Shown piece after piece: positions 1,378 through 62,732 of a stretch of DNA of 64,000 bases; the first letter of the stretch is position 1, and every line of letters begins with the position of its first letter. The translations under genes and the position numbers were made by a program. Below the pieces are notes generated by a model. The model was given only the letters and a program-made list of their open reading frames with translations, did no database searches and had not been told where the DNA came from. The DNA lies in IMG/VR virus record IMGVR_UViG_3300028676_000003, positions 304,550 through 368,549 of that record; one strand, given 5' to 3'.

Positions 1378-1761
1378 ATGGTAGCAATATTAATAACATA
1401 CAATAAATGGCTTACAGAGTCTAAGTTATTTGTAGTAAAAGAAGTGAAGATGTTCGCAGGAATTGGACTTAAAGAGGCCAAGGATTTTGTGGACGAAATT
1501 GATAATAACATCCGTTTGGGTAAAACTATTTCTATTGGAAAAGGGAGTGAAACACACGAAATACTAAAATTCTTAAAAGAGAAAGACTTACTTTCATTTG
1601 TGGAAGCTCATAAGACTGGGCTAAAGAAAGAAAATCATCGTGTGGTTGCTAAGCGTAGCAAGGAATATGATATAGCTAGGTCTTGGTTCGATTCTTTGCA
1701 CCCAAAGAAACAAGCTATGATTCAAACGCTAATAAACGAAGAAAATGGCATTTCAGGATAA
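1378..1761 (+). CDS. ribosomal protein L7/L12 C-terminal domain-like protein, paralog 3
   Basis: KLFVVKEVKMFAGIGLKEAKDFVD matches bL12 signature KxxVIKxVRxxTGLGLKEAKDLVE. Confidence 0.7.
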   Translation: MVAILITYNKWLTESKLFVVKEVKMFAGIGLKEAKDFVDEIDNNIRLGKTISIGKGSETHEILKFLKEKDLLSFVEAHKTGLKKENHRVVAKRSKEYDIARSWFDSLHPKKQAMIQTLINEENGISG

Positions 1762-2443
1762 ATACGGAAGAACCCTACATTTTGATTTTAGTCCTGGAAC
1801 TACATCGGATGATAGAATAAATACAGAATGGAGAGAGCAGGTACAGAAGTTTCCTAAGCTGATTCATACTGAGAAACTAGACGGAGAAAACTCTTGTCTA
1901 TCTCAATATGGTGTCTTTGCTAGGTCACATGCGGCACCTACACTACATCCATGGGCTAACCACTTGAAAGAGAAGCAATCAGTAATTCAACATGACCTAA
2001 AAAGCATGGATTTTGAAATATTTGGTGAAAACCTATATGCTTTACACTCAATCATTTACCCTGAACTTACAGCACATTTCTATGTGTTTGGAATTAGGGT
2101 CCTTGATAAGTGGCTTTCATGGGAAGAAACCAAGCAATGGGCTGGATTCTTTGATTTTCAAGTGGTTCCCGAATTGGGAATTCAAGATACAACTGAACCT
2201 GAACTAATAAAATCAAGGGTACTAGAATTAGGTAGTCAGCCAAGCGTATTTGGTTCACAACAAAATAATACTGACCCGCTTATTGATTGTACACGTGAAG
2301 GTATTGTAAGTAGGAATATAGACGAATACACAGTTGAAGGTTTCAAAGAGAATATCTTCAAATATGTGAGAAAAGACCACGTTCAAACGGACGTTCATTG
2401 GAGTAAAACAATAACAAGAGCAAGACTAATACACGAATACTAA
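1745..2443 (+). CDS. ATP-dependent RNA ligase (Rnl2-like)
   Basis: motif I TEKLDGEN, IFGENLY, FYVFGI, REGIV, FKYVR. Confidence 0.85.
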   Translation: MAFQDKYGRTLHFDFSPGTTSDDRINTEWREQVQKFPKLIHTEKLDGENSCLSQYGVFARSHAAPTLHPWANHLKEKQSVIQHDLKSMDFEIFGENLYALHSIIYPELTAHFYVFGIRVLDKWLSWEETKQWAGFFDFQVVPELGIQDTTEPELIKSRVLELGSQPSVFGSQQNNTDPLIDCTREGIVSRNIDEYTVEGFKENIFKYVRKDHVQTDVHWSKTITRARLIHEY

Positions 2444-2628
2444 TGTTAGAAATATTTTTAACCATTTATATGGTATTGATTTGTGGAATACTTTTAAATA
2501 TCTTAGCTGGAACAGCATTTGATAGTTATTATGATAGAAGCAAAAAAGGTTTTTTATTAGGATGTTCATTGCTAATAATAAGTTGGTTTATACATGGATT
2601 ATTAATTCTATGGGGACATGGGAATTAG
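2443..2628 (+). CDS. small membrane protein
   Basis: two hydrophobic segments; TAATG coupling. Confidence 0.65.
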   Translation: MLEIFLTIYMVLICGILLNILAGTAFDSYYDRSKKGFLLGCSLLIISWFIHGLLILWGHGN

Positions 2629-2851
2629 AAATCTAATTGGAGCGATTGCCTCAGCCCATCAACGAAATAAGACCAAACCAAGAGGTAAAGAGGAAAAAGA
2701 GGTTTTAGAGCCTGACCATACTGGTTTTGTCCCTTATACAAAAGGATGGAAAGAGAAGCACTTAGAATGGGCCAATGCTGGCTTATGTGGTGAGTGTGGT
2801 GAACCATCGGGTGATGAATTAGGTATTTGTAATGAATGCCGTTGGAGTTAA
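2618..2851 (+). CDS. small Zn-ribbon protein
   Basis: CGEC...CNEC. Confidence 0.6.
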   Translation: MGIRNLIGAIASAHQRNKTKPRGKEEKEVLEPDHTGFVPYTKGWKEKHLEWANAGLCGECGEPSGDELGICNECRWS

Positions 2852-2854
2852 ATC

Positions 2855-3181
2855 ATGGGAAAGAAAGAAATTCGTAGAGACTTCAGAAATGACGTTTTTA
2901 CAAGAGATAAAAATACCTGTAAAGTATGTGGTGAAGTCCGAGAGTTAAGTCTTTTGGATGCTCACCACATTACTGATAGAGGGGAGATGCCTAATGGTGG
3001 TTACGTCAAAGAAAATGGTATTACCGTTTGTAAGGAAGACTGCCATTTGAAGGTTGAATGGTTCCATATCACTGAAGGTAAAGAATGGGAAGAAGGACTT
3101 CACCCTGACGACTTGTATAAGATGATTGGTTCATCTAAGGAGTTGGCTATTCAAAAAAGTGAGAGATTGCTTGCGAGATAA
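2855..3181 (+). CDS. HNH endonuclease
   Basis: RDKNTCKVC...DAHHI...NGITVC..CH. Confidence 0.8.
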   Translation: MGKKEIRRDFRNDVFTRDKNTCKVCGEVRELSLLDAHHITDRGEMPNGGYVKENGITVCKEDCHLKVEWFHITEGKEWEEGLHPDDLYKMIGSSKELAIQKSERLLAR

Positions 3182-3193
3182 CTTAATAATTTG

Positions 3194-3201
3194 TACCTTT
3201 G
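3194..3201 (+). promoter_or_regulatory. Bacteroidota -7 promoter box TACCTTTG
   Basis: TTGC ~21 nt upstream; ATG 4 nt downstream. Confidence 0.7.
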
Positions 3202-3205
3202 TAAT

Positions 3206-3922
3206 ATGGAATTTAAAAAGAAAGAAATAATCGGAATGATTCACTTGGCTGGCCCTGATGTGGTTGAAAAAGCTATGGAAGAAATCAAAATATATGAGGA
3301 AGAAGGTCTTTCAGGTATCATCATTGAAAATTATCACGGTAATACCAGTGAAGTTTTGAAGGTATTATCTCGATTAGAGCATCAACCAACTAGTCTTAGT
3401 GTAGGTATTAATATTCTACCTAATGAGTTCGAATTTGCTTTTAAGCTTTGTGATGATTATGAGTTTATTGATTTCATTCAATTAGACTATATCGCTGGTG
3501 CTTATGCTATTGGAGACAAGGTAATTAAGCTTGATGCAGATAAATTTATTGAGTTATCGATGAACCACAGCAAGGTTGAGGTTTACGGTGGCGTTTGGCC
3601 TAAATATTATAAACCATTGAAAGATAGTGTTCTTAGCGTTGATTTATTTGATGCTGTTTTCCTTGGAAGTGCCGTTGTTGTAACTGGTGAAGGTACTGGT
3701 TATGAAACACCTCTTGATAAGGTGAAAGAATTTGCTACCCTAATTGATGGTAAGGCTCCGCTAATTGTTGGAGCAGGACTTACAGCTGAAAATGTTAAAG
3801 AGCAACTTGAATTTGCTCAAGGTGGTATTGTTGGTAGTGCTTTTAAACCTAACGGTCGAACTCAGCAAATGGTTGATAGAGACTTGGTTAAAGCTTTTAT
3901 GGACGAAGTAAAAAAACTATGA
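3206..3922 (+). CDS. btpA: BtpA/SgcQ-family TIM-barrel protein
   Basis: IIGMIHL, GIIIENY, VGINILPN, AVVVTGEGTG, GGIVGSAFK; true start ATG 3206 (track's TTG lies inside the promoter). Confidence 0.8.
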   Translation: MEFKKKEIIGMIHLAGPDVVEKAMEEIKIYEEEGLSGIIIENYHGNTSEVLKVLSRLEHQPTSLSVGINILPNEFEFAFKLCDDYEFIDFIQLDYIAGAYAIGDKVIKLDADKFIELSMNHSKVEVYGGVWPKYYKPLKDSVLSVDLFDAVFLGSAVVVTGEGTGYETPLDKVKEFATLIDGKAPLIVGAGLTAENVKEQLEFAQGGIVGSAFKPNGRTQQMVDRDLVKAFMDEVKKL

Positions 3923-3923
3923 T

Positions 3924-4424
3924 ATGGAATGTAAAACTATTAAGTTCGTTAAAAAAAATGGTGAAGCAGTAATAGTAAATAAAGTAAAATATCCTAATTT
4001 TTTTGAAGCTGAAGCTCAAGCAAATGGAATAAATACACAATCTAAGGTATTCACTAAAAGAATGGCTTATCATTGTAGTATTTGTGGTCATTATCACGTT
4101 GGAACTTCGATTGAAGCACTAAAGAAACCGAAACCCAAAGATAAAAAAATAAAGCTTATTGGTGGTATCAAGATGCCGAAGGTAGTTGGTAGTATTGATT
4201 TACGATTGTTTAATAATCCACAACCAAGAGTCAAAAAAGTGATGAATAGCGTTTATGTTAATCGAAAAATTTATCATTATATGATAAAGATTAAGATTGT
4301 TGAAGTAATCTGCCCTGATGGAAAGAAAAAAAGACCTAAAATTGATAAAATTCTTGGACAACAAAAAAAGCTTAACCAAAAAAAGATAATTGAATACATC
4401 TCTAAAGAGATAGCAAAAAAATAG
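3924..4424 (+). CDS. Zn-finger protein (AYxCxxCxxYHVG), paralog of 5550
   Basis: MAYHCSICGHYHVG; KVVGSIDL. Confidence 0.6.
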   Translation: MECKTIKFVKKNGEAVIVNKVKYPNFFEAEAQANGINTQSKVFTKRMAYHCSICGHYHVGTSIEALKKPKPKDKKIKLIGGIKMPKVVGSIDLRLFNNPQPRVKKVMNSVYVNRKIYHYMIKIKIVEVICPDGKKKRPKIDKILGQQKKLNQKKIIEYISKEIAKK

Positions 4425-4429
4425 AAATC

Positions 4430-5542
4430 ATGTGGAAGTTTAAGTATTACGATATAGAGAAGGGTCCTGATTGGACAGCAATTGAAAGGAATTGCGAGTG
4501 GTTTCGTGATATGAAAGACGTTCCACAAGACAAGATATGGCATGCCGAAGGTGATGTTCAAATCCATACAAAAATGGTTTGTGAAGCACTTATCCAATTG
4601 TCTGAATTTCAAGAACTTAGTGAAGAAAAGAAACACATTATGTTTACAGGTGCGCTTATGCACGACATAGAGAAACGTTCTACAACTACAACTGAGTTCA
4701 AGAATGACAGAGAGTGTATTATTGCTCCTAAGCATGCTGAAAGAGGTGAGAAAACAGCAAGAGAAATTCTTTATATGGATTTTGATTGTCCTTATCATTC
4801 TAGAGAACAAATCTGTAAGATTGTTAAGTGGCACGGGAAGCCTCTACACGATGCATCTAATAAGACACTTGCTAGACTAGCAACACAAGTTCAATTACCA
4901 TTTCTAGCAATGATTGCAAAGGCCGATATTCTTGGCCGTATTTGTACTGATGCTGAAGAACACTTGGAAAGAATTGAATTTTTCCAAATGCAAGCAGAAG
5001 ACATTGGTTGTTGGGGTCGTACAATGTACTTTCAAAATCAATTGATTGAATATGAAGCTTTAAAAACGGGTAATTTATATTCACATCGTTTTGATGATAC
5101 GAAGTTTGAGGTAATGATGATGTCCGCAATCCCAGGTTCAGGCAAAGACCACTACGTTAAGAATAACCTTCAAGGGTGGCCTGTAATCAGTCTTGACGAT
5201 ATTAGAGCTGAGCTTAAGGTTAAGCCTTTAGATAAAAAGGGTAACGGACAAGTGATTCAACTAGCTAAAAAGAGAGCTAAGGAACTAATGGCTAAGCATA
5301 CAAATTTTGTATGGAATGCCACAAATATAACTCAACAAATGAGAGGTCAGTTGATTGAGTTATTTGAAGAATATGGTGGAAAGGTAACAATTGTTTATAT
5401 TGAGGTCCCTTATAAGACTCTTATCAAGCAAAATAACGATAGAGAAGCGATAGTTCCTCAAAGTGTTATTGAAAAGATGATTAGAAAATGGGAACCACCT
5501 ATTCGTGAAGAAGCATATAGAATATTAACTTTTACAAATTAA
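4430..5542 (+). CDS. HD-domain + P-loop polynucleotide kinase (AAA_33-like) fusion
   Basis: HAEGDVQIHT, LMHDIEK, Walker A AIPGSGKD, WNATN. Confidence 0.8.
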   Translation: MWKFKYYDIEKGPDWTAIERNCEWFRDMKDVPQDKIWHAEGDVQIHTKMVCEALIQLSEFQELSEEKKHIMFTGALMHDIEKRSTTTTEFKNDRECIIAPKHAERGEKTAREILYMDFDCPYHSREQICKIVKWHGKPLHDASNKTLARLATQVQLPFLAMIAKADILGRICTDAEEHLERIEFFQMQAEDIGCWGRTMYFQNQLIEYEALKTGNLYSHRFDDTKFEVMMMSAIPGSGKDHYVKNNLQGWPVISLDDIRAELKVKPLDKKGNGQVIQLAKKRAKELMAKHTNFVWNATNITQQMRGQLIELFEEYGGKVTIVYIEVPYKTLIKQNNDREAIVPQSVIEKMIRKWEPPIREEAYRILTFTN

Positions 5543-6247: not shown

Positions 6248-6272
6248 TAACGAAAAGATTTATAACATATGA

Positions 6273-6845
6273 ATGAATATTAAACAAAGACTTAGAGAGG
6301 TTTTATTAGAAGCCGAAAAAAAGGACCACAAACGAGAGTATGGTTGCCTTATGGTTTTCTTAGATGTTGACAAGAAAGCTTGGAAAGAATTACAAGATAT
6401 GATTGACAAGGACGACTTGTATACAGAAAAAGACGATGATGGTTATGGTCTAGAAGATAAACCACACGTTACAGTACTTTACGGACTTCATGGAGAGATT
6501 GAAGATAAGGAATTAGAGGTTGAAATCAATAAGATTACAGAACCTAAGATTTCTTTTAAGAATATTTCAACATTTGAGGCCGATAAGTATGATGTATTGA
6601 AATTTGATGTATCGAGTAGCGACTTGGTTAAACTTAACAAGAAATTCAAGGAATTTCCACATACTAGTACGTTCCCTAATTATCATCCTCATTGTACAAT
6701 TGCTTATCTGAAAAAGGGTGTTGCTGAAAAGTACATCAAAAAGGCTAAGGATTTGGTTAAGATGGATATGGAACCTGAAAAGGTTGTTTATTCTAAGGTT
6801 GATGGAACTGAGAAGAATTATAAAATAAATAAAAAAGAGGCTTAA
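6273..6845 (+). CDS. 2H phosphoesterase (T4 gp57B/Acb1-like)
   Basis: two HxT motifs (PHVTVLYG, PHCTIAY) and YGCLM N-terminal motif. Confidence 0.8.
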   Translation: MNIKQRLREVLLEAEKKDHKREYGCLMVFLDVDKKAWKELQDMIDKDDLYTEKDDDGYGLEDKPHVTVLYGLHGEIEDKELEVEINKITEPKISFKNISTFEADKYDVLKFDVSSSDLVKLNKKFKEFPHTSTFPNYHPHCTIAYLKKGVAEKYIKKAKDLVKMDMEPEKVVYSKVDGTEKNYKINKKEA

Positions 6846-6859
6846 CACCTCTTTTTTTT
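6831..6859. terminator. bidirectional intrinsic terminator
   Basis: AAAAAAGAGG-CTTAACA-CCTCTTTTTT between convergent genes. Confidence 0.8.
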
Positions 6860-7004
6860 ATTTACCTTGACCTTTGTTTTTCTTAAGATAGTTCTTAGAA
6901 CCTTTAAGTTTTGAGGCTTTTGATTTTGAGTGAACGCCTGGACGTTTCTTTCTTGTTTTGTGTACTTTTACACTTGTTGTAGTCCCTTTTGCTTTTGTTG
7001 CCAT
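6858..7004 (-). CDS. 48-aa Lys-rich basic protein ending GQGK
   Basis: ATG at 7004; KKRPGVHSK...SKNY...GQGK; shares terminator with 6273. Confidence 0.7.
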   Translation of the reverse strand: MATKAKGTTTSVKVHKTRKKRPGVHSKSKASKLKGSKNYLKKNKGQGK

Positions 7005-7019
7005 AGTATGTGTTTTTCT

Positions 7020-7027
7020 TATAAATA
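7020..7027 (-). promoter_or_regulatory. putative second-class (late?) promoter TATTTATA
   Basis: 15 nt upstream of ATG 7004; same motif before 19974, 54490, 62732. Confidence 0.4.
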
Positions 7028-7051
7028 CTTGCATACTTGGAAAAAAAATAG

Positions 7052-7059
7052 TACTTTTG
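7052..7059 (+). promoter_or_regulatory. Bacteroidota -7 box TACTTTTG
   Basis: TTGC at 7029 upstream. Confidence 0.7.
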
Positions 7060-7076
7060 TAAAAATAATTTAAAAT

Positions 7077-7397
7077 ATGAAAAATACAATTTACATTGAC
7101 ATTGACACAGACAGAGAACAAGTAATCCTTTTAGGAAAAGGAGCTGATTCTCCACCACCAACATCACCTGAAGAAGCCAAAGAAATGGTATTAAATGATG
7201 TTGAATGTATGACAGAAGCGTTGATATCACTGATGCATTTAGCACATGAAAATAAGTTTGGAGACAAAGAAGTTTTATTTGATGGTGTGATGAAAAAATT
7301 CTTCGATTATCGTAAAACATTCAATGTTGAAGTAGACATTGACCAACCAACAGAGCCTTCTGAAACAGAAGATAATACGAACGAAACTAATGAATAA
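7077..7397 (+). CDS. hypothetical acidic protein
   Basis: ORF behind promoter. Confidence 0.7.
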   Translation: MKNTIYIDIDTDREQVILLGKGADSPPPTSPEEAKEMVLNDVECMTEALISLMHLAHENKFGDKEVLFDGVMKKFFDYRKTFNVEVDIDQPTEPSETEDNTNETNE

Positions 7398-7588
7398 TGG
7401 ACGAATCAAGAAAGAAAGTGATTGCAACCATAAATTCATGCACGCAATTACAACACTTAGGAGCAACTAGAAAATTGGTATTCTTATACCTGAACAAATT
7501 TAATGGTCCTGCTTACGACAACAACTACAATGCGCTTATGCACATTTACGAAATTAAAAAACGAGAAATAATCAAAACAAATGGATAG
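7397..7588 (+). CDS. hypothetical protein
   Basis: TAATG-coupled ORF. Confidence 0.65.
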   Translation: MDESRKKVIATINSCTQLQHLGATRKLVFLYLNKFNGPAYDNNYNALMHIYEIKKREIIKTNG

Positions 7589-8399
7589 AACTATAAAAAA
7601 GATACAGAAGAATATATTTTACATGCTATTAGCAAACCCTGCTATATATTTGAAAGTATTGATTTATAGAACCGTTGGGATTGGTATTTTTACACTTTTC
7701 ATGGGGCTGACTATAAATTGGCTTGATTGGAACATATATACAATCCCAGCGTCTATGCATAGTCTTATCGGACTAGTAATTGGTTTACTCTTGGTTTTTA
7801 GAACCAACACAGCCTATGACCGTTGGTGGGAAGGTAGAAAGATGATTAGTGGGTTATGTCACGAAATTGACATGGTTTCAGCAAGACTATATGCTATGTC
7901 AGGCACTGAAAACGCTTATTCAATAGAAGGTTTCAGGTCTTCAACAGAGATGTTCTTAAAGAAGCTTCGAGATTTCCTTACAATCAACGAAGATGGTGAA
8001 AGTTCAAGTCAGTTTCATGCTTCGCAGAAGACAACGATAAAGAACGCTATGCTTGCCCTTAATGGAATGAATCAAGATAACATTCATGTTGCTGGCCTTA
8101 TGGCTTCGCTTAACAAGATGGTTGAATATTCAAATGCCTTGGAGAGAATCAAAAATACTCCAATTCCTTTATCTTATGTGTTTCACATCAAGATTAGTAT
8201 TTTCATATACTTGTTGTCATTACCGTTCGGTATTTTCCACGATTTAGAGCTATTTGCGGTACCATTGGTTATGTTGATATATTATATCATTGCGGGTGTA
8301 GAAATCATCAGTAACGAGATTGAAAATCCGTTTGCTGACGACCCGAATGACTTACCAACAAAAAAATTATTTGGCGTAATGCTTAAAACACTAGGATAA
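7581..8399 (+). CDS. bestrophin-family (YneE-like) anion channel
   Basis: LLVFRTNTAYDRWWEGR, ERIKNTPIP, EIENPF..DPNDLP; 4 TM segments. Confidence 0.9.
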   Translation: MDRTIKKIQKNIFYMLLANPAIYLKVLIYRTVGIGIFTLFMGLTINWLDWNIYTIPASMHSLIGLVIGLLLVFRTNTAYDRWWEGRKMISGLCHEIDMVSARLYAMSGTENAYSIEGFRSSTEMFLKKLRDFLTINEDGESSSQFHASQKTTIKNAMLALNGMNQDNIHVAGLMASLNKMVEYSNALERIKNTPIPLSYVFHIKISIFIYLLSLPFGIFHDLELFAVPLVMLIYYIIAGVEIISNEIENPFADDPNDLPTKKLFGVMLKTLG

Positions 8400-12367: not shown

Positions 12368-12375
12368 TACCTTTG
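12368..12375 (+). promoter_or_regulatory. Bacteroidota -7 box TACCTTTG
   Basis: TTG in terminator loop upstream. Confidence 0.7.
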
Positions 12376-12405
12376 CTCTATAATATTAACAAAACATATA
12401 AAAAA

Positions 12406-13422
12406 ATGGAAATTAAAACAGAACATAATCCTAAAGATTTTCAAGTTGGAGCGTTGGTTGGACGCTTTCACGTAGATGAATTACACATTGGTCACAGAGA
12501 ACTTATTGACCATGTTATCCAAAACCATAAAAAAGTAATTCTATTCTTAGGAGTTGCTAAAACAGTAGGTAGAAAAAATCCATTGGATTATGCCACTCGT
12601 AAAGCTATGATTCAGTTGGAATATCCTGATATCGTTATTCTTCCACTTGAAGATAAACGTTACAATACTGCTTGGGCCAGCAACTTAGACCATGCATTAA
12701 GCATTCCTTTCGGTGAGAAAAAAGCTCTTATTTATGGTAGCCGTGACTCATTCATTCCATCTTACAAAGAAGGAAAAGGTAGAAATAAAACCGTTGAATT
12801 AGAGCCAAGTGTTGACTATTCAGGAACTGCTGTAAGAGAAAAAATTGCTAGTGAAATAATTAATCATCCATTTTTTAGAGCTGGAATTATTTATTCAGTT
12901 TATGGTGAAAGAGCCAAAACGTTTCCAACAGTAGATATTTGTGCTTACAATGAGCAAGGACAAATCCTTTTGGCTAAGAAGCCTGATGAGAAGCTTTGGA
13001 GATTTGTTGGTGGATTCGTTGATAGAAATGATGGTTCTTATGAAATTGCCGCTAAACGTGAATTCTACGAGGAAACTGGTGGTGATGCCCGTTTAGGGGA
13101 AAAATTAAAATATATTTGCAGTCAAAGCGTTGATGATTGGAGATACCGTGATACAGAAAATGGAATCATGACAACTCTTTTCTTAGGTAGATATGCATTT
13201 GGACAAGCAGTTGCTTCAGATGATTTAGCAAATGGTGGTGACCTTCAATGGGTTGATATCAAAGATTTTAGTAATTTCGATGGAATTAGAACTAAAGTGA
13301 TGCCTGAACACAGAGACCTTATGACCAAATTGATTGATGCTGTTTACGAAGAAGGACTTATTCCAAACATTGGAACTAGACTTCCTGAAAGAGAAGGAAA
13401 TATCACGTATACTCAAGAGTAA
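12406..13422 (+). CDS. nadM: bifunctional NMN adenylyltransferase / ADP-ribose Nudix hydrolase (NadM-Nudix, NatV-like)
   Basis: GRFHVDELHIGH (HxGH), KNPL, YGSRDSF, SGT; Nudix box GGFVD.....AAKREFYEETG. Confidence 0.9.
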   Translation: MEIKTEHNPKDFQVGALVGRFHVDELHIGHRELIDHVIQNHKKVILFLGVAKTVGRKNPLDYATRKAMIQLEYPDIVILPLEDKRYNTAWASNLDHALSIPFGEKKALIYGSRDSFIPSYKEGKGRNKTVELEPSVDYSGTAVREKIASEIINHPFFRAGIIYSVYGERAKTFPTVDICAYNEQGQILLAKKPDEKLWRFVGGFVDRNDGSYEIAAKREFYEETGGDARLGEKLKYICSQSVDDWRYRDTENGIMTTLFLGRYAFGQAVASDDLANGGDLQWVDIKDFSNFDGIRTKVMPEHRDLMTKLIDAVYEEGLIPNIGTRLPEREGNITYTQE

Positions 13423-13446
13423 ATATAAACCAACTAAAAGAATCAT

Positions 13447-14064
13447 ATGAAAGTATTAGAATTACTTGGGATTAACCCAACAAAAGGAGAATTGGTTACA
13501 CTTACTGGTAAAACAGGACATGGAAGAACAAGTATGTTAGTTAAGATTGCTTGCGACTTGGCTAACGAAGGTAAGAGTGTATTGTTTATCAGCGATGAAT
13601 TAGCAATTCATCAAATAGCTGAAAAATGTACTCCATTATTAAAAATCGAGAACCCTAGATTTAAAGCTGTTAGAAGTGATTATCCAGTTGAAATTATTAC
13701 TGATTACTTCGCAGAAGAACAAGACATTGATGTTGTAGTTCTTGATGGTTACTTCGGTAACAAGACCAATTTCAGAGTTCTAGCGCAAAAACACGATACA
13801 TTAATCATAAATACAATTCAAATGAATAAAAGCGGATTTGTTACTGGAGATACAAGACCAATGATGACTTCTGATTGTGTAATTTCGGTTACAAGAATCA
13901 ATGGTAGCTTGACTTTATTGGATAAATTGAAAAATTTCTTCTTGTTTTGGAAACCTAAAAAAGTGGCTCCAAATACACAGTTGGCTTTGATTAAAAACCG
14001 TCATGGTAAACAAACGAAAACCGATATCAACTTCGATTTTCAAAGTTTACAAATAAAAAAGTAA
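13447..14064 (+). CDS. RecA/DnaB-like P-loop domain with degenerate Walker A
   Basis: GKTGHGRTS, LFISDE, VVVLDG, SD.VI, LIKNRHG. Confidence 0.6.
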   Translation: MKVLELLGINPTKGELVTLTGKTGHGRTSMLVKIACDLANEGKSVLFISDELAIHQIAEKCTPLLKIENPRFKAVRSDYPVEIITDYFAEEQDIDVVVLDGYFGNKTNFRVLAQKHDTLIINTIQMNKSGFVTGDTRPMMTSDCVISVTRINGSLTLLDKLKNFFLFWKPKKVAPNTQLALIKNRHGKQTKTDINFDFQSLQIKK

Positions 14065-14094
14065 AAAAAGCTTGTACGGTAAGATATTTTGTTG

Positions 14095-14102
14095 TACCTT
14101 TG
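14095..14102 (+). promoter_or_regulatory. Bacteroidota -7 box TACCTTTG
   Basis: CTTGT upstream. Confidence 0.7.
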
Positions 14103-14120
14103 TCATCTAAATAAAAAGAA

Positions 14121-14753
14121 ATGGACGAACATATTACTAGATTAGTTGACGTGATGGACACCATCAAACATGATGAAGTCACAATCCTAACTGGCCGAAA
14201 TGCTGGTGGGAAATCACTTATCAGAAAACAACTTGTTTTCCGTATTGCCAAAGCCCTAGATAAAGAACCTAAAAATGTCTTTATCCCAAGTGCTTCACAA
14301 GAGCTAAGAACCAAGTCACAGCCAAGTATGGGAGCATTGTCTTCTATTGGTCATGACTTAGAGTGGTTAGCTACTTCTGATAGTACTGTTCACAGCTTGG
14401 AGCAAGTATTCAAGTACCATACTGAAAAGGCAGACTATGTTATCATAGATGAACCTGAAATTGGTATTGGTGAAGAATTGCAATTAGGTATTGCTGATTA
14501 CCTTAATGAGGAAATCGCTAAGTTAAAAGCAATGGGTAAGGGTTGTTTGATTATCTGCCATAGCAGACTTATTGCTAAGAATGTAGTCCATGATACTTTC
14601 ATTAACTTGGAAGGTATGACTGAAGAGGAATGGTTAAATCGTGTTCCTCAAAAGATTTCAGTTGAAGATTTTAAAGCGTTTGCTACGGGATTATTCTCAG
14701 CAATCGGAGACAGAGAAAGAGAAAATAAAGAAAAACAAAAAGAACAAAACTAA
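14121..14753 (+). CDS. ABC-type ATPase domain protein
   Basis: GRNAGGKS, IIDEPEIG, IICHS. Confidence 0.75.
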   Translation: MDEHITRLVDVMDTIKHDEVTILTGRNAGGKSLIRKQLVFRIAKALDKEPKNVFIPSASQELRTKSQPSMGALSSIGHDLEWLATSDSTVHSLEQVFKYHTEKADYVIIDEPEIGIGEELQLGIADYLNEEIAKLKAMGKGCLIICHSRLIAKNVVHDTFINLEGMTEEEWLNRVPQKISVEDFKAFATGLFSAIGDRERENKEKQKEQN

Positions 14754-14754
14754 T

Positions 14755-16338
14755 ATGAGCGGACAAAGAAACCTTGCTAGAAGATTAGAAAGAGCTATCA
14801 ACACTGGGAATATGGATGCTATTAAAGCAATGCAAACTCACTTGTTGAAGGTCCTTGTAAAACCACAAAACCTTATCCTAGCCTCAGATGGTTATAAATA
14901 CTCACACCACAGATTCTATGGTGCTGAAATGACCAAAATGATTTCGTATTGCGAATCAAGAGGTGGGAAATTCTCAGAGACCGTATTCTACGGCCTACAA
15001 ATATTCCTTAAACAATACTTAGAAGGAATCGCTATCACAACAGAAGAAATTGACCAAGCACAAGAAATCCTTGGTAGTCAATTAGGTATCTTCGGCCGTG
15101 ATGATGTATTCGACAGAAGCAAATTTGACTATATCGTTGAAAAACACGGTGGTAAGCTTCCAATCGCTATAAAAGCTGTTCCTGAAGGAACGGTTGTAAA
15201 TACCAAAAATGTATTATTCGTTATTGAGAGTCTTGACGATAATTGTGCATGGTTAACCAATTTCTTAGAAAGCCTTTTGCTTCAAGTTTGGTACCCAATT
15301 ACGGTTGCTACACTTTCAAGAGAAGTGAAAAAAATCGTATTGAAAGCGTTCAATAAATGCACATCTTATGATGAAGCAACTATTGATTTCCTTGTTCAAT
15401 TCGTATTAAACGACTTCGGATTCCGTGGAACGTCAAGCGTTCAGTCTGCCAGTGTTGGTGGTTCTGCTCACTTGGTTAACTTTAGAGGTTCTGATACCGT
15501 TGTTGCTAGTGACTTGATTAGAGAAATGTACAATACCAATACCGTTTACGGCTTAAGTATTCCTGCTACAGAACACTCTATTATGACACTTAAAGGTGAA
15601 GAAGGAGAGCTTGATATGATGAGAAGAGTACTTACAACATTCCCTACAGGACTTGTTGCTTGCGTATCTGATTCATACAATATCTTTAGAGCATGTTCTC
15701 AGTATTGGGGTCAAGACTTGATTGATTTAATCTTGAGCAGACCTGCGACACCTGGAAACCAACTAGTTATCCGTCCTGATTCAGGTCACGTAATCAGAAC
15801 ACTTAAGGAAATCTTTAGTATCTTGTTTGACAAGTTCGGTTATACAGTAAATGAAAAAGGTTACAAGGTATTGCCACCACAAGTACGTGTAATTCAAGGT
15901 GATGGTGTTAACTTAAACTCAATCATTGAAATTTACCAAATGCTTGAAGACGAAAAGATTTCTCCTGAGAACTTAGCGTTAGGTATGGGTGGTAAATTGC
16001 TTCAAGCTGATATCGATAGAGATACACAAAACTTTGCTACAAAGGCTTGTTCTGCTATCGTTGACGGTAAAAAGGTTGATATTATCAAGTCACCAACAGA
16101 AATGGATGCTGATGGTAACATCAGTCAATCATTCAAAAAATCTAAAAAAGGTGAACTTAAATTGGTCTTAAATGACGATGGAAGAACATACAGAACAGTA
16201 ACGTCATTAGACGCTGAGTATGACCACGTTAAAGATGAATTGGTTCCAGTTTTCAGAATGGGTGAAATCCTTGTTGACTATGGATTTGAAGAAATCCGTG
16301 AGAGAGCAAGGGTAAAAGACTACGAATTGGTAGCATAA
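14755..16338 (+). CDS. nadV: nicotinamide phosphoribosyltransferase (NAMPT/NadV)
   Basis: SDGYKYSH, LNDFGFRG, SIPATEHS, VSDSY, VIRPDSG, IQGDG, GMGGKLLQ, KKSKKG; start ATG 14755. Confidence 0.92.
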   Translation: MSGQRNLARRLERAINTGNMDAIKAMQTHLLKVLVKPQNLILASDGYKYSHHRFYGAEMTKMISYCESRGGKFSETVFYGLQIFLKQYLEGIAITTEEIDQAQEILGSQLGIFGRDDVFDRSKFDYIVEKHGGKLPIAIKAVPEGTVVNTKNVLFVIESLDDNCAWLTNFLESLLLQVWYPITVATLSREVKKIVLKAFNKCTSYDEATIDFLVQFVLNDFGFRGTSSVQSASVGGSAHLVNFRGSDTVVASDLIREMYNTNTVYGLSIPATEHSIMTLKGEEGELDMMRRVLTTFPTGLVACVSDSYNIFRACSQYWGQDLIDLILSRPATPGNQLVIRPDSGHVIRTLKEIFSILFDKFGYTVNEKGYKVLPPQVRVIQGDGVNLNSIIEIYQMLEDEKISPENLALGMGGKLLQADIDRDTQNFATKACSAIVDGKKVDIIKSPTEMDADGNISQSFKKSKKGELKLVLNDDGRTYRTVTSLDAEYDHVKDELVPVFRMGEILVDYGFEEIRERARVKDYELVA

Positions 16339-26103: not shown

Positions 26104-27078
26104 ATGTCACAATCAGTATTAGTATCACTTGACGGCCGTACAGAATTGGCCTTAAATATTATCAAAAGCGTTGCAAAACACTTTGGAGACCCAAACAATT
26201 ATGTCTTTTTAGACTTCGTTAATTCACAAAAATTCTCTGATGGAGAACTATGTGTGGATTATAAAAATTCTATTCGTGGAAAGCGAGTTTATATCCTTAC
26301 AAGTCCGAATACTTCAGACGAGATTATGAAAATGACTCTAGCGATAGATGCCGCTAAGAGAGCGGCCGCAAAGGAAATCATCGTAATTCTACCTTATTTC
26401 CCATATGCCCGTCAAGATAAAAAAGACCAAGCTCGTGGACCAATTGGAGCAACAATTATTTCAAAAATGATTCAAGTTCTTGGTGCTACAGGTATCATTA
26501 CATATGACTTACATGCTGACCAAATTCAAGGTTACTTTGATATTCCAGTAACTCACTTAGAAGGAAAGAATGTCTTTGATTCTTACATTGCTAAGATTGC
26601 TGATGAAGATACTGTTCTTTGTGGACCTGATGCAGGTTCTGCCAAGAGAGTTAAGAGAATGAAAGACCAATTACAAACATATCATAATACTTCACTTAAC
26701 ATTGTCATGTTAGACAAGAGCCGTAAAGAGGCAAATGTTATTGACGAAATGATTATCATTGGTGATGTAACTGGTAAGAACGTTATTATTGTTGATGATA
26801 TGGTTGATACCGCAGGGACACTATGTAAGGCGGCTGAGGTCCTAATGAATGCAGGTGCTAAGAGTGTAAGAGCCGTGATTAGTCATGGTGTTTTATCAGG
26901 TCCAGCTTATGATAGAATCGAAGCTAGTGTTTTAACTGAATTGGTTGTTAGTGATTCATTAGATGTTAAACCAAGTCCTAAGATTAAGGTAATTAGCGTT
27001 GAACAACAAATAGCATTTGCTATCTGTGCAATCAATAGTGATTCAAGTTATGAAGGACTAAGAAAAGAAAGATTCTAA
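26104..27078 (+). CDS. prs: ribose-phosphate pyrophosphokinase (PRPP synthetase) family
   Basis: FSDGE, PYFPYARQDK, DLHADQIQGYF, PDAGS, IIVDDMVDTAGT, HGVLSG. Confidence 0.92.
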   Translation: MSQSVLVSLDGRTELALNIIKSVAKHFGDPNNYVFLDFVNSQKFSDGELCVDYKNSIRGKRVYILTSPNTSDEIMKMTLAIDAAKRAAAKEIIVILPYFPYARQDKKDQARGPIGATIISKMIQVLGATGIITYDLHADQIQGYFDIPVTHLEGKNVFDSYIAKIADEDTVLCGPDAGSAKRVKRMKDQLQTYHNTSLNIVMLDKSRKEANVIDEMIIIGDVTGKNVIIVDDMVDTAGTLCKAAEVLMNAGAKSVRAVISHGVLSGPAYDRIEASVLTELVVSDSLDVKPSPKIKVISVEQQIAFAICAINSDSSYEGLRKERF

Positions 27079-43523: not shown

Positions 43524-45515
43524 ATGATTGAAATTAATGATATCCTACAAGGAAGAATTAGCGTTAATGCTAGTGGTTCTGCGTACTTGGTAAGCCCCGA
43601 TTTACCAAAAGACATTTATCTACACAAGTCTAACACTAACAAAGCGTTACACTTAGATACTGTAAAAATAAGAATAATTGAAGGTAAAGACAATAGTCGT
43701 AAACTTGAAGGTGAAGTAATAGAAATAGTTGAACGTTTTAGAACTGAGTTCGTTGGAGTAATCCAAATAAACGCTAAACATGCTTTCTTCATTCCTGATA
43801 GTAGAAAACTCATCAATGACTTCTTTATTCCAAAAGATAAATTGCTTGGAGCAACTGATGGACAAAAAGTAATTGTTAGACTTACTGAATGGAAAGACGA
43901 TGCCAAGAACCCTAACGGTGAAATTATCCGTATTCTTGGGAACGCTGGTGAACACGAAACTGAAATTCACGCTATCCTTGAAGAATATGGTTTACCATAT
44001 GACTTCGAAGAAGATGTACTTGCCGAAGCTAGAGCAATCCCTATTGAAATCCCACAAGCAGAAATTGACAAGCGTAGAGATATGCGTGATGTTATTACAT
44101 TCACTATCGACCCTGCTGATGCTAAGGATTTCGATGATGCTTTAAGTGTTGAATGGGTTAACGGTGAATTGTTCCTTGGTGTTCACATTGCCGATGTATC
44201 TCACTACTTAAGACCTGATACTGAATTAGATAAAGAAGCCTATGCAAGAGGAACAAGTGTTTATCTTGTTGATAGATGTGTGCCAATGCTTCCTGAGAAC
44301 TTATCAAACGGATTATGTTCGTTAAGACCACATGAAGATAAGTTATGTTTCTCAGCTGTATTCAAGTTGGACCATAACGGAAGTGTTCTTGAAGAGTGGT
44401 TTGGTAAAACAGTAATCAACTCTAATCATAGATTCTCTTATGAGCAAGCTCAAGAAATCATTGAAGCTGAAAAAGGTTCAACAACTCTTATTTACAAACC
44501 AAGAGGTAATGGTCCTTCAATAGGACCACACCACGAAGAAATTGCTAATGTTAACAAATGTTTCCAAGCAATTCGTGACTTGAACAAGATTGCTCAGAAG
44601 ATGCGTAAAGCTCGTCTTAAACATGGTGCCTTATCATTTGATAAACAAGAGGTTAAGTTTGACCTAGATGAAAACAATAAACCTATAGGTATCAAGTTTA
44701 AGACTGCTAAGGATTCTAACAAGCTTATTGAAGAATTTATGCTTCTAGCTAACAAGCATGTTGCACAATTCATCAATAAAAAGGAATTACCTAACGTAAA
44801 CAGGTCTCACGATAAACCTAACGAAGCTAAAGTAGAAGCTCTTAAGGAGTTTGTTAAGCAATTTGGGTATGAAGTGAAGAATTCTAGCCCTGAAGAGACT
44901 ACTAAGTCCCTTAATCAGTTGCTAAAAGACGTTAGAGGTACTGCCGAAGCTGATATGATTGATAATCTAGTAGTAAGAACAATGCAAAAAGCTACATATA
45001 GCACAAAAAACATTGGTCACTACGGTCTTGGGTTCAAAGATTACTCACATTTCACTTCTCCTATTAGAAGATATCCTGATGTAATCATTCATAGACTACT
45101 TGGAATGTATTTAGACACTGAAAGAGTATCTAAAACTGTTCCTAAGATAGAAAAGCTAGAAGGAAGATGCTTACATTTATCTGAAAGAGAGAAAAAAGCA
45201 CAAAAAGCGGAGCGTGATTCAATAAAATACATGCAATGTATCTATATGAGTGAGAATATTGGTAAGGTTTTCCAAGGAATTATCAGTTCTGTAACAGAAT
45301 ATGGTATTTTTGTAGAGATTTTAGAGAATAAATGCGAAGGACTTATCAAATTATCTAATATTGAAGGTGATGCTTATACAGTAGACATGAATAATTATAC
45401 TGTTAAAGGATATAACACTGGTAAAAAGCTTAGACTAGGTGATGTAGTACATGTAATTGTATCTAGTGTTGATATAGAGAAAAAAAATATCAATCTATCA
45501 TTGATTAATTTGTAG
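43524..45515 (+). CDS. rnr: ribonuclease R
   Basis: TIDP.DAKDFDDA, VHIADVSHY, RGTSVY, IEEFMLLAN, HFTSPIRRYPD, C-terminal S1. Confidence 0.95.
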   Translation: MIEINDILQGRISVNASGSAYLVSPDLPKDIYLHKSNTNKALHLDTVKIRIIEGKDNSRKLEGEVIEIVERFRTEFVGVIQINAKHAFFIPDSRKLINDFFIPKDKLLGATDGQKVIVRLTEWKDDAKNPNGEIIRILGNAGEHETEIHAILEEYGLPYDFEEDVLAEARAIPIEIPQAEIDKRRDMRDVITFTIDPADAKDFDDALSVEWVNGELFLGVHIADVSHYLRPDTELDKEAYARGTSVYLVDRCVPMLPENLSNGLCSLRPHEDKLCFSAVFKLDHNGSVLEEWFGKTVINSNHRFSYEQAQEIIEAEKGSTTLIYKPRGNGPSIGPHHEEIANVNKCFQAIRDLNKIAQKMRKARLKHGALSFDKQEVKFDLDENNKPIGIKFKTAKDSNKLIEEFMLLANKHVAQFINKKELPNVNRSHDKPNEAKVEALKEFVKQFGYEVKNSSPEETTKSLNQLLKDVRGTAEADMIDNLVVRTMQKATYSTKNIGHYGLGFKDYSHFTSPIRRYPDVIIHRLLGMYLDTERVSKTVPKIEKLEGRCLHLSEREKKAQKAERDSIKYMQCIYMSENIGKVFQGIISSVTEYGIFVEILENKCEGLIKLSNIEGDAYTVDMNNYTVKGYNTGKKLRLGDVVHVIVSSVDIEKKNINLSLINL

Positions 45516-54411: not shown

Positions 54412-54463
54412 TAAGCGGTGTACACATTTGTGTACATAGAGTGTTTTTTTATGCTAAACTAGA

Positions 54464-54471
54464 TATTTATA
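54464..54471 (+). promoter_or_regulatory. putative second-class promoter TATTTATA
   Basis: 18 nt upstream of ATG 54490. Confidence 0.4.
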
Positions 54472-54489
54472 ATAAAGAAAACACATCAG

Positions 54490-54888
54490 ATGGAAAAAAA
54501 TATAATCAAAGAAAAGTTAAGAGAATCTTTATTCAGTCGTATTAAAGAGACTAACAAGACTAGCGGAGAACAACACCCGCAAGAGCATAAAGATGAAGAA
54601 GGAACAGGGAATGGAACCTTTAACGACTTAGATAAGGAAGAGAAAAAGAAAGTTCAAACCCTTACAAAGAAAATCAAGAACGCAACACAAGGACCAAGCA
54701 AGTTACTTAAGTTATCTCAAGTAATGGATGCGGCTGGTGTAGGTGATGCAGACAATGCTACTGACAGGTCAGCAATCGGTAAGGCCGTATCAGGTAAGCC
54801 TGATGCAGACGGTAAGATTAGACACTTGAATGTAAAGCAAGCTAACGCCATGGGGAAAGTCGTAGACAACCCTGTTGCATTTAAATAA
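54490..54888 (+). CDS. hypothetical protein with IKxxLRExL N-terminal tag
   Basis: IKEKLRESL resembles IKQRLREVL of the 2H protein. Confidence 0.7.
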   Translation: MEKNIIKEKLRESLFSRIKETNKTSGEQHPQEHKDEEGTGNGTFNDLDKEEKKKVQTLTKKIKNATQGPSKLLKLSQVMDAAGVGDADNATDRSAIGKAVSGKPDADGKIRHLNVKQANAMGKVVDNPVAFK

Positions 54889-62492: not shown

Positions 62493-62732
62493 CTATTTAA
62501 AGTAAGGTTTAAGGACCAATTCTAAAGCATTATGCAAGTTATCTTCAAGGAGCTTAGCTTCTTTTTCATCAAGGTTTAAATCAAAAGGAATCTCAACGGT
62601 AATTGAAACCTTATTATCACTTATTTTCGTATCATAGATAGCACCATCAGTTTGACACTCAGTCTTTACTGCTTCGTTGACTACTTTAAAGTTCTTAAAC
62701 ATATCTATGTGTTCTCTAATTGAATTTCTCAT
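62493..62732 (-). CDS. hypothetical protein
   Basis: fills gap; own TATTTATA motif. Confidence 0.65.
   Translation of the reverse strand: MRNSIREHIDMFKNFKVVNEAVKTECQTDGAIYDTKISDNKVSITVEIPFDLNLDEKEAKLLEDNLHNALELVLKPYFK

Follow-up and report, generated by a model that had tools for sequence, protein, structure and literature searches.

The window analysed here, 64,000 nucleotides in length, is the last 64 kb (positions 304,550 to 368,549) of the IMG/VR virus record IMGVR_UViG_3300028676_000003, a 368,549-bp record of a T4-like jumbo phage that CheckV rates 100% complete. It contains a gene for a 190-aa 2H phosphoesterase starting MNIKQRLREVLLEA, with both HxT motifs, and an otherwise unrelated gene, ORF 54490, starting MEKNIIKEKLRESLF (Table 1). 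The initial annotation had noticed that both N-termini share an I-K-x-x-L-R-E-x-L motif, and our analysis confirmed it. It had also proposed a weaker third case in ORF 62732, which starts MRNSIREHI. This one is not established, since it was not among the 40 best scores when the proteome was scanned with a position-specific scoring matrix (PSSM) of the motif. The region around the 2H gene is rich in auxiliary and counter-defence genes, such as NUDIX, NAMPT and PRPP synthetase.

Table 1. Features of the 64-kb window, with positions counted from its first nucleotide.
Position	Strand	Feature	Remarks
1745-2443		RNA ligase	Within 5 kb of the 2H gene
4430-5542		HD plus AAA_33 kinase	Within 5 kb of the 2H gene
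6258-6265	+	ATTTATAA promoter-like element	15 nt before the ATG of the 2H gene
6273-6845	+	2H phosphoesterase gene (Acb1-like), 190 aa	Stop codon included
6273-6311	+	Residues 1-13, predicted capsid-targeting propeptide	Two [L/I]-x-E sites (L7-R-E9 and L11-L-E13); predicted mature N-terminus V10 or, more likely, A14
6312-6335	+	Residues 14-21, hydrophilic, basic linker	Kept even in tag-less homologues; possible short active-site lid (inferred)
6336-6830	+	Residues 22-186, 2H catalytic core
6465-6473	+	First HxT motif	H65-V-T67
6690-6698	+	Second HxT motif	H140-C-T142
6831-6857		Bidirectional terminator-like hairpin	Overlaps the stop codon; 2 found in the region against 0.4 expected
54463-54473	+	ATATTTATAAT promoter-like element	Before ORF 54490
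54490-54888	+	Small basic protein of unknown function, 132 aa, pI 9.4	Carries the same tag; residues 1-12 end in L-R-E
62493-62732	-	ORF 62732, 79 aa	Weak, doubtful tag (MRNSIRE); same promoter-like element

At the enzyme level, Pfam matched 2_5_RNA_ligase2 at 41 bits and Acb1 (PF23474) at 29.5 bits, a marginal pass against a cut-off of 27, whereas PHROGs gave a generic 'RNA ligase' family. A word search retrieved 171 homologues, mostly 185-190 aa and nearly all full-length matches, and most family members carry the precomputed PF23474 hit. In an alignment of 47 of them, H65, T67, H140 and T142 were invariant, as were the aromatic residues F101, Y137, Y145 and Y173. The AF2 model had a pLDDT of 87. 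Most of the listed solved 2H structures aligned from model residue 22: Usb1 (Z 14.4), plant CPDase (13.0), PDE-9 (12.2), LigT (11.7) and Acb1 (11.5). Nearly all matches began at residues 17-22, the exceptions being the penguinpox rows at rmsd above 7 A and one Usb1 row. The fold alone does not single out Acb1, since Usb1 and plant CPDase scored higher. A BFVD search retrieved mostly generically named phage 2H proteins, with named Acb1 entries lower down. Tenacibaculum phage PTm1 was a distant structural match. However, a family profile run against all PDB sequences found only Acb1-type proteins: 9q2g, the Burkholderia phage BCSR5 enzyme (PDE-9), at E 6e-5, and 7t26, the FBB1 Acb1, at E 0.09. 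PDE-9 belongs to structural group 3 together with T4 Acb1 and degrades 3'3'-cGAMP. We classify the protein as an Acb1-like 2H phosphodiesterase of unknown substrate.

The RNA ligase and the HD-kinase encoded just upstream raise the possibility that the enzyme is instead an RNA 2',3'-cyclic phosphodiesterase of a tRNA repair pathway. The arrangement recurs in one close relative, and another has tRNA genes beside the 2H gene. Moreover, the best Pfam score is the generic 2'-5' RNA ligase family, plant CPDase and LigT are good fold matches, and jumbo-phage 2H enzymes have been read this way. Despite this, among 79 related loci the kinase was within 6 kb in 2 and the RNA ligase in none, and the family profile found no LigT, CPDase or Trl1 sequence at E up to 1. 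By analogy with HD-Pnk enzymes, the HD domain of the kinase may already supply the end-healing phosphoesterase. We consider RNA repair unlikely, but this alternative concerns the substrate only and is compatible with packaging.

The first 21 residues lie outside the 2H fold. In the model, residues 1-20 scored 59 and 47 in blocks of ten, with a low-confidence amphipathic helix at residues 3-14 and a linker with pLDDT below 50 at residues 12-18. Distant homologues lack the tag and start at the core: Maribacter phage Molly, LR756508, and several IMG/VR lineages. Of 117 homologues with a recognisable core start, 114 had an extension of 12 aa or more; 113 of these contained a hydrophobic-x-E, and the last such site ended at residue 13-14 in 74.

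To assess whether the shared motif could arise by chance, we called 638 genes in the whole genome and searched for the regex [IVLM]K..[LIVM]RE.[LIVMF], taken from the two sequences of the initial annotation. It occurred 7 times in about 112,000 residues. Four hits were at called N-termini, one at a probable internal start, and one at the boundary of a fused gene whose second half is a separate, tagged gene in a relative; only one was truly internal. Column shuffles that keep the position-specific composition of the N-termini expected 0.048 strict matches, and none of 2000 reached the observed 4. Since two of those four sequences defined the motif, the clean test is an independent related genome, G003 (complete, 288 kb), where the same regex gave 4 matches against 0.043 expected (0 of 2000). 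In a second complete relative, G004 (353 kb), 6 relaxed matches were found against 1.7 expected (P = 0.0055). Both relatives show the same N-terminal motif on many proteins.

In the PSSM scan, the eight best scores of the proteome were six called N-termini, the probable internal start and the module boundary, with the 2H N-terminus ranking first. The two best sites not used to build the matrix were both at called N-termini. The protein bodies are unrelated by BLAST, and one of them is a GNAT acetyltransferase. The hydrophobic-x-E of the tag ended at residues 9-14 in every case, and a second such site often followed 4-5 residues later. ORF 54490 belongs to a widespread, well conserved family, in which 117 of 119 homologues keep a hydrophobic-x-E ending at residues 8-16, and L-R-E-S is present in most. 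It looks like an internal head protein.

The genome encodes a T4-type head module in T4 order: a gp20 portal (PF07230, 243 bits), an S77 gp21-type prohead protease (PF03420, 87 bits), an acidic 428-aa scaffold-like protein whose N-terminus resembles the tag, and a gp23 capsid protein (PF07068, 238 bits). A tagged 151-aa protein is encoded directly after the capsid protein, and another tagged gene lies 3 kb further on. The nearest relatives of the capsid protein are an uncultured 484-kb phage, Flavobacterium phage immuto and other distant T4-like phages. A megablast of 5 kb against the phage collection found nothing, so no cultured close relative with virion proteomics could be used. In T4, gp21 cuts after Glu of L/I-x-E, and the first 10 residues of IPIII, MKTYQEFIAE, are enough to load foreign proteins into heads. 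The most conserved part of the tag described here is [L/I]-x-E, which is the gp21 cleavage rule. Across the relatives, position P2 of the site varies (R, N, K, A, L), while [L/I] at P3 and Glu at P1 mostly persist, as expected of a gp21-type site. All eight large related records with a tagged 2H in which it could be assessed encode an S77 protease. However, tag-less Molly and LR756508 also encode S77 proteases, so having the protease does not predict the tag. A complex prediction of the protease with residues 1-40 of the 2H protein scored 0.00 and is neither for nor against cleavage.

The tag also behaves as a module. Orthologues of the 2H enzyme, of ORF 54490 and of two other proteins keep a tag, and the G003 orthologue of ORF 54490 is among them. 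A nucleotidyltransferase is tagged in G004 and untagged in this genome, and the alignment starts exactly after 14 residues. Moreover, the tag flavour follows the genome. In another relative, G011 (160 kb), the 2H homologue starts with a peptide ending F-L-I-E, and a regex derived only from T4's tag hit 16 of 226 N-termini, the 2H homologue included, against 0.31 expected (0 of 1000 shuffles). The bodies are unrelated, and 13 of the 16 tags end at residue 13. The window-type regex gave 0 hits in G011, whereas the T4-type regex was at background in this genome, G003 and G004. A receptor-specific signal that evolves together with its receptor predicts exactly this. In G012, however, no shared flavour was found around its 2H tag. 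Tagged proteins in relatives include an ART-PolyVal ADP-ribosyltransferase, a PolyA_pol nucleotidyltransferase and a RimK-type ATP-grasp enzyme. ART and GNAT domains are known in injected phage proteins.

These comparisons bear on a second alternative, in which the N-terminal 21 residues are a catalytic lid, as in PDE-9 and the penguinpox cGAMP phosphodiesterase, and the likeness to other N-termini is a generic amphipathic helix. PDE-9, the best sequence match among solved structures, uses its residues 1-15 as an N-terminal lid, model residue 22 aligns with PDE-9 residue 16, and lids are modelled with low confidence, as here. However, a lid cannot explain the same motif on a GNAT, an ART, a nucleotidyltransferase and many unknown proteins, nor the switch of flavour with the genome, nor the tag-less 2H lineages that keep only the short linker. 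The conserved residues are L, R and E, and no conserved aromatic residue like the W147 of Acb1's lid was seen in the tag. Thus, we regard this reading as improbable for the tag, although the two roles can coexist: residues 14-21 may be the lid after processing.

The ATTTATAA element lies 11-57 nt, mostly 14-25 nt, before 25 gene starts, and 15-25 nt before the ATG of the 2H gene, ORF 54490 and ORF 62732. Tagged genes are enriched for it (4 of 9 against 21 of 629, Fisher P = 2e-4). It precedes a sheath-like gene and two tail-fibre-like genes, but also a family B DNA polymerase gene and a glycosyltransferase gene. Therefore, the second-class promoter of the initial annotation is real as a motif, but it is not a clean late class, and late co-expression with head genes is not established. 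The tail genes, together with the amphipathic helix and the lack of localisation data, leave room for a peptide that directs proteins somewhere other than the head (membrane, tail or baseplate assembly, a replication compartment) or serves as a common oligomerisation helix. We find this very unlikely: the most conserved part of the tag is the T4 prohead-protease site and not the helix face, the G011 flavour is close to the experimentally defined T4 head tag, and reading the sequences shows no hydrophobic membrane segment in the tag.

Altogether, the inference of the initial annotation, that an anti-CBASS-type nuclease may be packaged in the virion and injected with the DNA, is supported as far as computation can take it, although there is no direct evidence of virion location or cleavage, and the substrate is inferred. 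We suggest, as somewhat more likely than not, that the gene encodes a 2H phosphodiesterase of the Acb1 kind made as a precursor, whose first 13 or so residues are a lineage-specific version of the T4 capsid-targeting sequence. The amphipathic peptide would take the enzyme into the scaffolding core of the assembling prohead, and the gp21-type protease would then cut after Glu of an [L/I]-x-E site, at E9 or more likely E13. The mature enzyme would stay in the head with the DNA and enter the next host cell with it. There it would hydrolyse nucleotide immune signals (CBASS or type III CRISPR cyclic oligonucleotides) by the metal-independent HxT/HxT mechanism, before any phage gene is expressed.

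The peptide could also be a prohead-protease propeptide without being a packaging signal. In this reading, the enzyme is made as an inhibited or unstable precursor and switched on in the cytoplasm late in infection, which is when such proteases trigger CBASS. The [L/I]-x-E sites fit the gp21 rule, T4-type prohead proteases cleave and activate CD-NTases late in infection, and a lid-position peptide could block the active site. However, in T4 the same kind of peptide has been shown by experiment to target proteins into the head, the tag sits on many enzymes with no link to CBASS, and two tagged genes lie in or next to the head module. This reading is not excluded, but it seems unlikely.

Known signal-degrading counter-defence enzymes (Acb1, Apyc1, ring nucleases) are described as proteins made after infection. 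A copy delivered with the DNA would act at time zero, which matters for defences that fire on the first transcripts, such as type III CRISPR, or in cells that are already alerted. More tentatively, a large clade of uncultured T4-like jumbo phages may use short N-terminal capsid-targeting tags specific to each lineage, and the set of proteins injected with the DNA could then be read directly from the genome. That set would be dominated by host-takeover and counter-defence enzymes: an Acb1-like phosphodiesterase, an ADP-ribosyltransferase, a GNAT, a nucleotidyltransferase and an ATP-grasp enzyme. The pre-loaded phosphodiesterase would be the first case of a signal-degrading anti-CBASS or anti-type III CRISPR enzyme delivered in the virion; we found no report of a packaged Acb1-type enzyme. 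The T4 capsid-targeting principle has been treated as a feature of T-even phages, and these data suggest that it is widespread in environmental jumbo phages. The tags can be found by simple N-terminal statistics, which gives a testable way to predict injected proteins in uncultured phages, as well as portable tags for loading foreign proteins into large capsids.

Compared with known enzymes, T4 Acb1 (gp57B) and Erwinia phage FBB1 Acb1 (PDB 7T26/7T27) share the 2H fold, the HxT/HxT tetrad and the small single-domain architecture. The protein described here has about 16% identity, a larger core (165 against about 150 aa) and an N-terminal 13-aa tag that T4 Acb1 is not known to have; the Acb1 of phage G was not found in its proteomic data. 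Burkholderia phage BCSR5 PDE-9 (PDB 9Q2G/9Q2Y) also has an N-terminal extension before the core. In PDE-9 it is a lid shown to act in catalysis, whereas here it carries a motif shared with unrelated proteins of the same genome. LigT and Trl1-type 2',3'-cyclic phosphodiesterases of RNA repair have the same fold and catalytic motifs, but the linkage to RNA ligase and kinase genes is not conserved in the family.

Regarding packaging, the T4 internal proteins IPI, IPII, IPIII and Alt likewise carry a short N-terminal peptide ending in [L/I]-x-E on otherwise unrelated proteins, with a gp21-type protease and a gp20/gp22/gp23-type head encoded in the same genome, and the ADP-ribosyltransferase of a relative parallels the packaged Alt. 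The tag sequence in this phage differs (I-K-x-x-L-R-E-x-L, 9-13 aa), and its cargo is mostly enzymes rather than small basic proteins. In phiKZ-like giant phages (phiKZ, 201phi2-1, SPN3US), many head-internal proteins are trimmed after Glu by a diverged gp21-type protease, and redundant cleavage sites occur in propeptides, in line with the tandem [L/I]-x-E sites seen here. However, those phages use a different cleavage logo and have no defined short N-terminal targeting peptide, while this phage has a canonical T4-type capsid protein and portal. Finally, vibriophage ICP3 Gp15 is a virion-delivered protein that counters CBASS, the one such protein we found, but it is a structural DNA-ejection protein that blocks the effector CapV stoichiometrically and does not degrade the signal.

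Upstream of the 2H gene, we found an RNA ligase, a BtpA-family protein, and an HD plus AAA_33 kinase that resembles bifunctional HD-Pnk end-healing enzymes. This is a likely RNA or tRNA repair cassette, and it is conserved in one close relative (locus L006) but not across the 2H family. The NUDIX protein, the nicotinamide phosphoribosyltransferase (NAMPT_N plus NAPRTase), and the PRPP synthetase together form an NAD+ salvage set of the kind phages use against NAD-depleting defences, which is also present in relatives L006 and L007.

Locations of additional features in the window, in the complete phage genome (G000), and in the relative G011
Coordinates	Locus coordinates	Strand	Feature
Window 1745-5542			RNA ligase (PF09414), BtpA-family protein, and HD plus AAA_33 kinase
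Window 6831-6857			Bidirectional hairpin
Window 6858-7004		-	ORF of about 48 aa, from the internal ATG of the 87-aa ORF 6858-7121
Window 7077-7397			106-aa acidic protein of unknown function
Window 7581-8399			Bestrophin-family channel protein (PF25539)
Window 12373-16338 and 26104-27078			NUDIX protein, nicotinamide phosphoribosyltransferase, and PRPP synthetase
Window 43524-45515			RNase R/II-type exoribonuclease
Window 54463-54473			Promoter-like element (example)
G000:C1:71811-72539	L003 3812-4540	-	242-aa ORF fusing two modules
G000:C1:90626-92452	L004 6627-8453		Capsid protein, 608 aa
G011:C1:123815-131198	L149 3815-11198		Six tagged genes

Among the neighbors of the 2H gene, the acidic protein is the most conserved one (within 6 kb in 23 of 79 related loci), so it is a candidate functional partner. 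The phage also encodes a bestrophin-family channel protein (150 bits), which is found next to the 2H gene in L006 and in another locus, L016. Besides, a very basic minus-strand ORF lies in a region otherwise entirely plus-stranded, and it converges on the same bidirectional hairpin as the 2H gene. Further along the window, the phage genome harbors a full-length exoribonuclease (RNB at 368 bits) with cold-shock and S1 domains.

Genome-wide, a promoter-like element with consensus ATATTTATAA(T/A) lies 11-57 nt, mostly 14-25 nt, before 25 gene starts in G000. It is not the host sigma-70 pattern.

We also observed the tag in an internal position. The 242-aa ORF of G000 fuses two modules that are separate genes in the related genome G003, and the tag lies exactly at the module boundary. 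It may be a polyprotein cut by the prohead protease, or a second start. Moreover, G003 has a 962-aa ORF with one N-terminal and one internal tag.

At the capsid level, the Pfam Gp23 match of the capsid protein and its phage relatives cover mainly residues 281-608, so the N-terminal part seems to hold a large extra region. A likely propeptide site (L-T-E followed by S, near residue 60) precedes a segment that seems to resemble the N-terminus of the mature T4 gp23 protein. Finally, in G011, the six clustered genes lie within 7.4 kb, and all of them carry T4-like tags, with the 2H gene 8 kb downstream. This arrangement is reminiscent of what appear to be the hypervariable internal-protein cassettes of T-even phages.
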